The notes beneath the pieces were generated by a model that made no database searches, was not told where the DNA came from, and saw nothing but the letters and a program-made list of their open reading frames with translations. A stretch of 64,000 nt of DNA, taken from the IMG/VR virus record IMGVR_UViG_3300035212_003113, positions 1 through 64,000 of that record. The stretch is one strand, 5' to 3'. The position numbers and the translations under genes are program-made. Positions 8,486 to 35,886 of this stretch are shown one piece after another (the stretch's first letter is position 1; each line of letters begins with the position of its first letter).

Positions 8486-8752
8486 ATGAAGCTACTTGAC
8501 CTCCAACTGGACGAAGCATTTGCTGTCCGTGATTATGACGGCATGGTGACGCTAGTTGCGCAGCACCTAAGCATACGGCTCCCAAGAGAGAGGGCGGCTA
8601 TAGATACATCTAGTCCCGGCAACTGGCGCTGGGGCCGAGTGGTTATTTATCAAGATGGCTCCCGCTATATCTATTGCCGTGGTGGTGGCAGTAGAACAAG
8701 TCCTACTGTTTCCATCTTTGATTGCGGAATCATATCAGAGTTGCCAAGATGA
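8486..8752 (+). CDS. family A paralog
   Basis: MKLLDLQLDEAF..RDY...HL. Confidence 0.7.
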   Translation: MKLLDLQLDEAFAVRDYDGMVTLVAQHLSIRLPRERAAIDTSSPGNWRWGRVVIYQDGSRYIYCRGGGSRTSPTVSIFDCGIISELPR

Positions 8753-9039
8753 AGCTAGAGTCGTATGCTATGCGCGAGGCGCTGGAGGCCGGAGATACGG
8801 CCACCGCTGTGCGCGTGCTTGCGACCTACTATGGCTTTCCTGATCCGGTAGAAATACCGATTACCGTAATCGGCAAAAACATGCCGCCTTTTGAAAGAGA
8901 AAGACGCCTGCTATTCTGGTGCGGCGACGACTTCTATGAGTGGAGTTCTGAGTCCGGCTTTGACCGGGGCGTGCATCCTTATTCCCTAGGCAGCGACGTA
9001 GCACCGAGCCGCATAGAAAGCATCATTCTTTGGAAATAG
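8749..9039 (+). CDS. family A paralog
   Basis: MKLESYAMREAL...YYG...YEW...GF. Confidence 0.8.
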   Translation: MKLESYAMREALEAGDTATAVRVLATYYGFPDPVEIPITVIGKNMPPFERERRLLFWCGDDFYEWSSESGFDRGVHPYSLGSDVAPSRIESIILWK

Positions 9040-12481: not shown

Positions 12482-12551
12482 ATCGGCATAGCTTAGTAGC
12501 AAAGCCCCGCATTGTCTGCGGGAGATGCAGGTGCGAGCCCTGCTGCCGGTT
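12482..12551 (+). tRNA. tRNA-like element with aberrant anticodon arm (Asp/Thr-like, possibly pseudo)
   Basis: acceptor ATCGGCA/TGCCGGT, D stem GCTT/AAGC, T arm GCAGG-TGCGAGC-CCTGC; anticodon loop non-canonical. Confidence 0.5.
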
Positions 12552-15495: not shown

Positions 15496-15572
15496 GGGCA
15501 ATGGGACTGCTGAGGGTGGTCGCCTGATTTGCACTCAGGATATTCAGCTCGGTGCAAATCCGAGATTGTCCA
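15496..15572 (+). tRNA. tRNA-Ala(UGC)
   Basis: cloverleaf, CCTGA-TTTGCAC-TCAGG, G3:U70 and A73 alanine determinants; no encoded CCA. Confidence 0.85.
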
Positions 15573-15587
15573 CAAATATTGATTAGT

Positions 15588-16718: not shown

Positions 16719-16816
16719 TGCCCGTTCTCGCGCTACTTGCCGTAGCTGGGAGAGCCGCCTTGAAAGAGTCCGGCAAGGGATTCTCCTCGGTCCCGGTTCG
16801 ATTCCGGGGCGGGCAG
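16719..16816 (+). ncRNA. atypical tRNA-like RNA
   Basis: TGCCCGT/GCGGGCA acceptor, CCCGG-TTCGATT-CCGGG T arm; interior not a standard cloverleaf. Confidence 0.45.
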
Positions 16817-18387: not shown

Positions 18388-18465
18388 CCGCTGTTAGCTA
18401 AATTGGTGACGGCAGCCCGCTCATAACGGGAAGATATGTAGGTTCGAGTCCTACACAGCGGACCA
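18388..18465 (+). tRNA. tRNA(CAU), probably Ile2
   Basis: cloverleaf, CTCATAA loop, encoded CCA, C4:G69 and C29:G41, directly upstream of tilS. Confidence 0.85.
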
Positions 18466-25124: not shown

Positions 25125-25212
25125 GGGAAAATGGCCGAGTGGCTTAAGGCACCGGATTACTAACCCGGCGTACCGCAAGGTACCGTGAGTTCGACTCTCA
25201 CTTTTCCCGCCA
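25125..25212 (+). tRNA. tRNA-Ser with ACU anticodon
   Basis: GGGAAAA/TTTTCCC acceptor, TT-ACT-AA loop, long variable arm, G73, encoded CCA. Confidence 0.8.
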
Positions 25213-34516: not shown

Positions 34517-35012
34517 ATGCGCTATACCGCTTTTGTAGGGCCTCGCTGAGTCGCTTGCTACTCAGTTTCGTGATGATTCTCTGCAACACCAGGTTGTTGC
34601 TTTTGCAATTCGAGGCGGCACCGTTTTGGGGTTCGGTGTAAATCAGCGGCGTTATTCTCGCGGCAGCTCGGTCTTCCGCCAGTCAATGCACGCTGAGATG
34701 GACCTGATTCGCAAGCTCGGTGATCGTACTGCCGGCGCCAAGATTTATATTTATCGTTTCAACAATGCAGACGGACCGCAATCCCGGTGCAATAAGAATG
34801 GTCGTCCGTGCATGCTGTGTCAGCACGCGCTTAAGGAGACGGGTGTGTCGCGTGTTGTTTACGTGAATGACGACGGGATTGTCAGCACGCTCAAGCCTCG
34901 TGACATGGTTGCTTTGATTGGGCATCCGACCGAGATCACGCGCCACTTCCTGAATAGGTATTCCGGCAACCACCACGGCAGGTTTGTTGCGCAGGATTTC
35001 CTTGCGGGATAG
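34517..35012 (+). CDS. zinc-dependent (cytidine/dCMP-type) deaminase with apparent frameshift near start
   Basis: HAE...PCMLC motifs; SD plus ATG at 34517 joins main frame only if one G of GTAGGGC (34538) is skipped. Confidence 0.75.
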
Positions 35013-35618: not shown

Positions 35619-35704
35619 GCCCTGATGGTGGAATGGTTTACACAGCAGATTTAAAATCTGTCGCTCGCAAGAGTTTGTCGGTTCGAGTCCGACTCGGGGC
35701 ACCA
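35619..35704 (+). tRNA. tRNA-Leu(UAA)
   Basis: GCAGA-TTTAAAA-TCTGT, long variable arm, encoded CCA. Confidence 0.9.
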
Positions 35705-35812: not shown

Positions 35813-35886
35813 TGGGGAATCGTCCAATGGCAGGACAACGGATTCTGATTCCGTTTATCTAGGTTCGAGTCCTAGTTCCCCAACCA
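35813..35886 (+). tRNA. tRNA-Gln(CUG)
   Basis: U1:A72, ACGGA-TTCTGAT-TCCGT, encoded CCA. Confidence 0.9.

Follow-up and report, generated by a model that had tools for sequence, protein, structure and literature searches.

The DNA analysed here, 64,000 nucleotides long and referred to below as the window, covers the first 64 kb of an IMG/VR virus record of 371,675 bp (IMGVR_UViG_3300035212_003113). We describe a serine tRNA gene in the window whose anticodon, ACU, carries an encoded adenosine at the wobble position (A34). Judged by sequence, tRNA-Ser(ACU) is a conserved phage tRNA family present in dozens of phage genomes; its cloverleaf is under selection and A34 is fixed. We regard it as probable that the window gene encodes a functional phage serine tRNA that keeps A34 unmodified and is specific for AGU. 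The record has direct terminal repeats, a G+C content of 51%, and a CheckV completeness estimate of 100%.

The gene and its main structural elements are the following.

25125-25212, plus strand: tRNA-Ser(ACU), 88 nt, class II, CCA encoded (ARAGORN, Rfam RF00005, family covariation)
25152-25168, plus strand: anticodon arm CCGGA-UUACUAA-CCCGG, with U33 at 25158 and A37 at 25162
25159-25161, plus strand: anticodon ACT (A34 C35 U36), cognate to codon AGU (ARAGORN)
25169-25184, plus strand: long variable arm, 16 nt, with a 5-bp stem and a 4-nt loop (ARAGORN drawing)
25209-25212, plus strand: discriminator G73 (25209) and encoded 3' CCA (25210-25212), read from the sequence

ARAGORN calls the gene tRNA-Ser(act), with the anticodon at position 35 of the gene, and Rfam RF00005 matches over the full model (1-71) at 52.5 bits against a cut-off of 29. 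The acceptor stem has 7 bp, the D stem has 3 bp (G10:C25, C11:G24, and C12:G23), and the T arm is normal; the sole stem mismatch is A31 (25156), which faces C39 (25164). A preliminary description of this DNA had presented a well-formed class II tRNA-Ser with an ACU anticodon, an A31-C39 mismatch, G73, and CCA, and ARAGORN, Rfam, and the sequence bear out each of these features. A 3-bp D stem with C11:G24 and a discriminator G73 are identity elements for seryl-tRNA synthetase (SerRS), and the window gene has all of them. G73 recurs in 23 of 25 distinct family genes among the matches listed; the nearest relative, on a contig that we call L001, has A73. The variable arm is the main class II serine mark, and its three outer pairs all covary across the family. 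The closest annotated relatives of the window tRNA are all tRNA-Ser; its body is of the type that reads UCN codons, and its nearest relatives in cultured phages are Ser(UGA/CGA) tRNAs at 74-79% identity. Reading the anticodon loop as CUA or as a four-base anticodon was considered on paper and set aside, as U33 would then not precede the anticodon.

The family emerged from scans in which the anticodon was free to vary. In IMG/VR, a pattern made of the arm and its flanks, with all three anticodon bases free, hit 22 places; 18 are class II serine tRNAs, all with ACT, and neither GCT nor any other serine anticodon occurs among the Ser-type matches at these places. A looser scan added 3 genes with a normal A31-U39 pair, and a shorter IMG/VR pattern added 1 more. 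Across 185,579 prokaryote species genomes, the sole match lies on a 3.6-kb contig binned into a metagenome-assembled genome (MAG), itself a phage-like tRNA array. Metagenome contigs scanned with position 34 free yielded, among the matches listed, at least 21 further Ser(ACU) genes, at least 4-5 Ser(GCU) genes with an identical arm, and about 90 ordinary tRNA-Arg(UCU) genes, mostly on GC-rich contigs. Bacterial tRNA-Arg(UCU) usually has this arm with U34/U39, and a version with G34/U39 is found in tRNA-Ser(GCU); it is therefore a common "NCU" anticodon arm, here combined with A34. The family comprises at least 45 genes, at least 25 of them distinct, from IMG/VR, metagenomes, and the one MAG contig, where some metagenome and IMG/VR contigs may duplicate one another. 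A34 is invariant in every family gene found. The A could in principle be a sequencing or assembly error in a tRNA-Ser(GCU), but the same A34 stands in at least 44 other genes from independent assemblies and also in cultured phages, and the body is UCN-type rather than GCU-type; we give this explanation next to no credence.

Covariation shows that the cloverleaf has been maintained. The alignment of the 25 distinct genes (from the matches listed) was scored over 23 stem pairs, with 500 shuffles and shifted-register controls. Standard pairs fill 96.7% of pair cells, and 13 of the 23 pairs have changed on both sides; no shuffle (0 of 500) scored as high, and the shifted-register controls were 34-50% paired. 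The sole non-pair in the alignment is A31.C39, in 19 of the 25 distinct sequences. L001, a 24.8-kb fragment of a related phage that has many proteins in common with the window phage at 60-97% identity, carries a tRNA that is 92% identical to the window gene, with a compensated acceptor-stem change (G3:C70 versus A3:U70). At another locus (L206), Ser(ACU) stands beside a Ser(GCU) with a different, GCU-type body; within one array the two are thus separate isoacceptors, and the ACU gene is not a recent mutant. A tree of serine tRNAs built without the anticodon arm places the ACU genes in about three groups; with roughly 70 nt, its resolution is too low to tell a single origin from several. Several arrays also hold, beside Ser(ACU), an 85-nt class II tRNA with an 8-nt anticodon loop, AAGUAGUU, for example at L128 2517-2601 and also in L125, L129, L131, L134, and L272; ARAGORN reports it as Tyr/Leu, "gtag", without assignment.

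The family extends to cultured phages. Three family representatives compared by blastn with cultured phages gave no match above 82% identity. The 82% match is the annotated tRNA-Ser(act) of Rhizobium phage RHph_TM30, a Cuauhnahuacvirus (MN988521.1, 128636-128725; GenBank annotation), with identical copies in RHph_TM40 and RHph_Y65; its identity is 82% with family member L128 and 76% with the window tRNA. Like the window tRNA, it is a class II serine tRNA with A34-C35-U36, U33, and A37-A38, carried by a large phage within or close to a tRNA array; the Rhizobium phage gene lies near 22 other tRNAs in a 23-tRNA array that includes Ser(UGA) and Arg(UCU). The arm differs, reading CCUGA-CUACUAA-UCAGG, fully paired, with C32 and a U29-A41 pair; the anticodon stem therefore covaries too, and A34 is kept in a different arm. 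The other cultured-phage matches that we checked have the anticodons UGA, CGA, GGA, or GCU. No paper discussing a phage tRNA-Ser(ACU), the Rhizobium phage gene included, turned up in the literature searched. Purifying selection maintains the gene in dozens of phage genomes, those of these cultured Rhizobium phages among them.

Codon use in most carriers matches an AGU reader. Carriers are almost all AT-rich (33-47% G+C); the ratio AGT/(AGT+AGC) at carrier loci is mostly 0.6-0.85, and in two carrier groups AGU is the top of the six serine codons (34-36%). RHph_TM30 has 151 AGT and 31 AGC (0.83) in 28 annotated genes, a stronger T bias than in its other boxes of NNY codons (0.65 T). Most of the tRNAs alongside Ser(ACU) are readers of codons that end in A (Ile-UAU, Arg-UCU, Leu-UAA, Thr-UGU, Ala-UGC, and Gln-UUG). 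G34 is retained for the other two-codon NNY boxes of the carrier arrays (Asn-GUU, Tyr-GUA, Cys-GCA, and Asp-GUC), so that A34 is specific to serine. A changed genetic code, with AGR read as serine, was considered and rejected: AGA and AGG align with arginine, and AGT and AGC with serine, in relatives, and the code is standard.

SerRS charges its tRNAs via the class II body and does not read the anticodon; it would charge the phage tRNA through that body. A34 would stay unmodified and form a Watson-Crick pair with AGU and little else, and the phage would thereby supply a tRNA devoted to AGU beside the one tRNA-Ser(GCU) of the host, which reads AGU by G.U wobble only. The only direct data on this anticodon come from Escherichia coli. 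There, an orthogonal Methanocaldococcus jannaschii tRNA with ACU in a loop identical to that of tRNA-Arg2 acquired no inosine and read AGU at 9.4%, with AGC and AGA below detection and AGG at 0.36% (PMC11066159). Two of the engineered two-fold-box ANN tRNAs improved growth in E. coli, Ser-tRNA(ACU) among them; the authors credit the gain to a low chance of misreading, and the tRNA was harmless or beneficial (bioRxiv 10.64898/2026.05.15.725136). We infer the unmodified A34 and the AGU-only reading from these E. coli experiments, which used other tRNA bodies; we favour an AGU specialist because the ACU anticodon was unedited and read AGU only and because carriers favour AGU. That an A34 tRNA for a split codon box is unusual in cells, as the preliminary description had it, agrees with a GtRNAdb survey in which two-fold-box ANN tRNAs are sporadic (5 of 132 high-scoring non-ACG ANN genes), always accompany a GNN tRNA, and never replace it (bioRxiv 10.64898/2026.05.15.725136).

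The family would have arisen in AT-rich, AGU-preferring phages, where it would mostly have been kept, and the 51%-GC jumbo phage of the window would have inherited its gene from an AT-rich lineage. G001, a complete 188-kb carrier with 34% G+C, has 25 of 181 long open reading frames (ORFs) in common with the window phage, as well as an 86%-identical tRNA-Ser and a 95%-identical tRNA-Gln (CUG in the window and UUG in G001), so that descent of the gene from an AT-rich lineage is probable.

Several observations weigh against reading the gene as an AGU specialist. AGU is a minor codon in the window genome, at 9.2 per 1000 (11% of serine codons and 31% of AGY), or about 940 codons in all. It is used evenly along the genome, with only a mild enrichment in two giant ORFs, so that demand is modest. 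Many AT-rich phages whose genes are just as rich in AGU have Ser(GCU) in its place, so that codon use by itself does not account for the choice of A rather than G. The decoding data were obtained with an M. jannaschii tRNA body and an E. coli backbone, which have C32 in place of U32 and lack A31.C39. Unmodified A34 reads C in some contexts, such as AGG at CCC (10.3%), with which the deaminated ACG anticodon at CGC (6.1%) is cited (PMC11066159). Expression, serylation, the state of A34, and reading confined to AGU are parts of the proposal that we infer. Lastly, a megablast search of the tRNA neighbourhood against cultured phages gave no match, and no close cultured relative turned up. The phage's GMP-reductase-like and DnaE-like proteins have only about 30-40% identity to those of cultured phages, and a search of E. 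coli genomes with the window tRNA gave no match. The two giant ORFs are adjacent and lie outside the window (268176-279007, plus strand; 1554 and 2056 codons); they have the highest AGU density of the genome, AGT about equal to AGC, and a lower G+C at third codon positions.

The low AGU demand also bears on whether the gene still matters to this phage, where it might be a nearly neutral heirloom of an AT-rich ancestor that contributes little now. AGU is under-used (31% of AGY, versus 54-59% T in other NNY boxes), the window phage and L001 are the only carriers that pair about 51% G+C with the gene, and the window phage keeps just five tRNAs. Yet the gene is fully intact, with no stem mismatch apart from A31.C39, and the compensated change relative to L001 argues for continued selection since the split. 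We consider the heirloom reading unlikely.

The unusual arm, with A34 and with C39 opposite A31, might alternatively serve mainly to escape or replace a tRNA-targeting enzyme of the host or of a rival, for instance an anticodon nuclease or a modifying toxin, that would disable tRNA-Ser in the course of infection, the phage copy keeping serine decoding going. Changes in the anticodon loop are known to make phage tRNAs resistant to such enzymes, and mycobacteriophages are reported to avoid UCN-type serine tRNAs, which VapC toxins cut at GA in the anticodon (PMC10264068); the window tRNA has a UCN-type serine body and an anticodon without GA. Ser(ACU) is the sole serine tRNA in several large arrays. 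Of 21 metagenome Ser(ACU) genes, 13 have C39, as do many tRNA-Thr(UGU) genes of phages, against 0 of 93 bacterial-type tRNA-Arg(UCU) arms of the same sequence, mostly on GC-rich contigs, all among the matches listed; C39 may thus be a phage-associated feature. Set against this, no nuclease that targets tRNA-Ser(GCU) or recognises its G34 is reported in the literature searched, an AGU-only tRNA could not replace the decoding of the other five serine codons, the fit to codon use already accounts for the distribution, and some members (the U39 group and RHph_TM30) have a normal A31-U39 pair. Nuclease evasion as the main role is, in our view, improbable. The arm CCGGA-UUNNNAA-CCCGG with A31.C39 also occurs in many other phage tRNAs: 33 Thr(UGU), together with Thr(CGU), Leu(CAA), Tyr, Cys, and a CUA suppressor-like tRNA, with example loci in IMG/VR (L006, L009, L011, and L012) as well as in metagenomes.

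A34 might also be converted to inosine. The preliminary description had raised possible deamination to I34 and had pointed to a phage deaminase at 34517, which is the following gene.

34517-35012, plus strand: deaminase of the cytidine deaminase (CDA) fold; the frame opened by the ATG stops at TGA 34547-34549, and from 34539 the +1 frame encodes the enzyme body

On this account, a relaxed host TadA or the phage CDA-fold deaminase edits A34, and the resulting tRNA (ICU) reads AGU, AGC, and, weakly, AGA. A reader of both AGY codons would be more useful in the window genome, where AGC (20.3 per 1000) outnumbers AGU, and E. coli TadA partly edits non-arginine anticodons, for example AUG and AAG (PMC11066159). 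The same study found ACU unedited in E. coli even in an Arg2-type loop, and changes at 32, 37, or 38 blocked TadA editing of other anticodons (PMC11066159). The window loop (U32-U33-A34-C35-U36-A37-A38) does not match the TadA-substrate loop (C32-U33-A34-C35-G36-A37-A38): it has U32 and U36 where the substrate has C32 and G36. In a split box, moreover, I34 would place serine at AGA, a codon that is common in most carriers. The suggestion of deamination thus finds no support in the E. coli result or in the loop, and we judge editing to inosine, by either enzyme, quite unlikely.

The enzyme itself points elsewhere. It has the HAE...PCxxC zinc motif that TadA shares, but its nearest relatives are pyrimidine deaminases. 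A 17-sequence profile compared with the PDB has the dCMP deaminase of cyanophage S-TIM5 as its best match (E 7.6e-6), with TadA at 1.4e-3. Foldseek returned cytidine, dCMP, RibD, and blasticidin deaminases in its top 50, and neither TadA nor ADAT; the structure model used for this came from the 17-sequence alignment (predicted local distance difference test, pLDDT, of 72.8), and an earlier 3-sequence model (pLDDT 62) was discarded. The full frame passes Pfam PF00383 (dCMP_cyt_deam_1) at 33.9 bits and has no match to the TadA-type PF14437, a family that was matched in 12 of 14 control genomes; an NCBIfam search gave no TadA match, and the PHROGs label for the gene is dCMP deaminase. The phage also encodes ThyA, the natural partner of dCMP deaminase, which fits a route from dCMP through dUMP to dTMP. 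The deaminase looks like a pyrimidine (dCMP-type) enzyme.

Some features of its distribution speak for editing. The deaminase is the most conserved protein between the window phage and the distant carrier G001 (63% identity, versus 25-58% for others); it is also present in L001 and absent from 5 large non-carrier phage records. But this co-occurrence is limited to related phages: 9 other carrier fragments are without the deaminase, and in RHph_TM30, a cultured carrier with a complete genome, the only counterpart is a dCMP deaminase of 20% identity. Close homologues (57-67% identity) occur in 21 IMG/VR contigs, G001 and L001 included, which appear to represent one phage lineage. In 19 deaminase-bearing contigs, all of them fragments, the tRNA arm was not found, and the two genes are 110 kb apart in G001. 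Given the fragments, this spacing, and the shared ancestry, co-occurrence is uninformative on a functional link, and nothing favours such a link beyond that ancestry. The deaminase noted in the preliminary description is a real CDA-fold enzyme, and its proposed connection to the tRNA finds no support in view of the pyrimidine relatives, ThyA, and RHph_TM30.

The deaminase gene has an unusual layout of its own. Its ATG frame meets a stop after 10 codons, and all 22 of 22 homologues are split in the same way into two frames: a Shine-Dalgarno sequence, an ATG, and a 10-codon frame ending (C/A)GC-TGA-R are followed by the enzyme body, conserved in the +1 frame in 22 of 22, where a TAG closes that frame just upstream. 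The alanine codon that overlaps the TGA is GCT in every one of the 22 homologues (L001 1309-1810, minus strand; G001:C1 14765-15270, minus strand; and L154-L174). Distant homologues (24-34% identity) are single ORFs. Gene callers give only N-terminally truncated products of 108-128 aa, and a word-based protein search found only three near-identical truncated calls. From these reading frames, the layout looks like a candidate programmed +1 frameshift at a stop codon, of the RF2/antizyme type. TGA is the main stop codon in the 356 long ORFs of the window genome (210 TGA, 75 TAA, and 71 TAG), which may be relevant to a frameshift that needs slow UGA termination. The boldest combination, in which the deaminase is made via this conserved +1 frameshift and edits the phage's A34 to inosine so that AGU and AGC are read, with AGA reading limited by competition from tRNA-Arg(UCU), strikes us as very unlikely. 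If true, no earlier case of I34 in a tRNA for a split codon box, or of a wobble deaminase encoded by a phage, would precede it.

Besides tRNA-Ser(ACU), four tRNA genes make up the set. ARAGORN finds five in the whole genome, all within the window.

12482-12551, plus strand: tRNA-Thr(UGU) (ARAGORN)
18388-18465, plus strand: tRNA with a CAU anticodon, Met, or Ile2 if lysidine-modified (ARAGORN, Rfam)
35619-35704, plus strand: tRNA-Leu(UAA) (ARAGORN, Rfam)
35813-35886, plus strand: tRNA-Gln(CUG) (ARAGORN, Rfam)

The CAU tRNA, called Met, could be tRNA-Ile2 reading AUA after lysidine modification; AUA is unusually frequent in the genome, with 31% of isoleucine codons (18 per 1000). The preliminary description had placed a tRNA-Arg(UCU) in the window and entertained a link between it and tRNA-Ser(ACU); the genome has no such gene, even with low ARAGORN thresholds or at Rfam E ≤ 1. 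Low-threshold ARAGORN calls of Phe(aaa) at 16734-16816, Ala(tgc) at 15496-15573, and Arg(cct) at c56836-56922 are poor, have no Rfam support, and were rejected. Sub-threshold Rfam matches to the plastid UTR families RF04351 and RF04354 lie opposite two of the tRNAs (25160-25209 and 18388-18463, both minus strand) and are most likely tRNA-derived artefacts of those models. L001 carries a tRNA-Ser(GGA) (8709-8798, minus strand) 23 nt from its Ser(ACU), which the window phage is without; tRNA content therefore varies between close relatives.

Ser(ACU) is an undescribed variant of phage tRNA biology with cultured representatives, and the window gene is one member of a family, not a unique oddity. 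Its interest lies in a general puzzle, namely why tRNAs whose anticodon begins with an unmodified A are almost absent from cells; the puzzle is sharper now that such tRNAs have proved functional and often harmless in E. coli (bioRxiv 10.64898/2026.05.15.725136). The phage tRNA is a counter-example from nature, and it belongs to the most restrictive class, that of a two-codon box whose first two bases are shared with arginine codons. It bears on how phages choose their tRNA sets and would offer an AGU-specific decoder that evolved naturally and might be used in codon reassignment. The cultured carriers make the state of A34, the specificity of reading, and the advantage over G34 testable.

Among known systems, bacterial tRNA-Ser(GCU), the normal AGC/AGU reader, serves the same amino acid and codon box, and some metagenome copies have the same arm with G34/U39. 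Its G34 forms Watson-Crick pairs with AGC and reads AGU by wobble, whereas the phage tRNA has A34 and a UCN-type body. The pair of tRNA-Arg(ACG) and TadA offers the likeness of an encoded A34, with U33-A34-C35 and A37-A38 in the loop; it differs in C32, G36, and a four-codon box, where the phage tRNA has U32, U36, and a split box. The engineered ACU tRNAs of E. coli have the same anticodon and provide the only direct ACU data (PMC11066159; bioRxiv 10.64898/2026.05.15.725136), but they are laboratory constructs in other bodies, while the phage family is natural and has persisted through long divergence. Natural non-arginine A34 is found in Leu(AAG) of Lactobacillales and in Thr(AGU) of Mycoplasma and others (bioRxiv 10.64898/2026.05.15.725136); there, too, A34 has been retained over evolution in AT-rich genomes that favour U-ending codons. 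Those tRNAs serve four-codon boxes, where misreading is harmless, and replace the GNN tRNA, in contrast to ACU, whose two-codon box has its first two bases in common with arginine AGA/AGG. Among phages, the T4-type codon-compensating tRNA sets resemble the present case in being phage-borne, in lying in an array, and, for most carriers though not in the window genome (AGT/AGY of 0.31), in a cognate codon that the phage favours, and the nuclease-resistant phage tRNAs resemble it in having an unusual anticodon arm (PMC10264068). These known phage cases keep a standard wobble base; in Ser(ACU), the wobble base itself is the odd feature.

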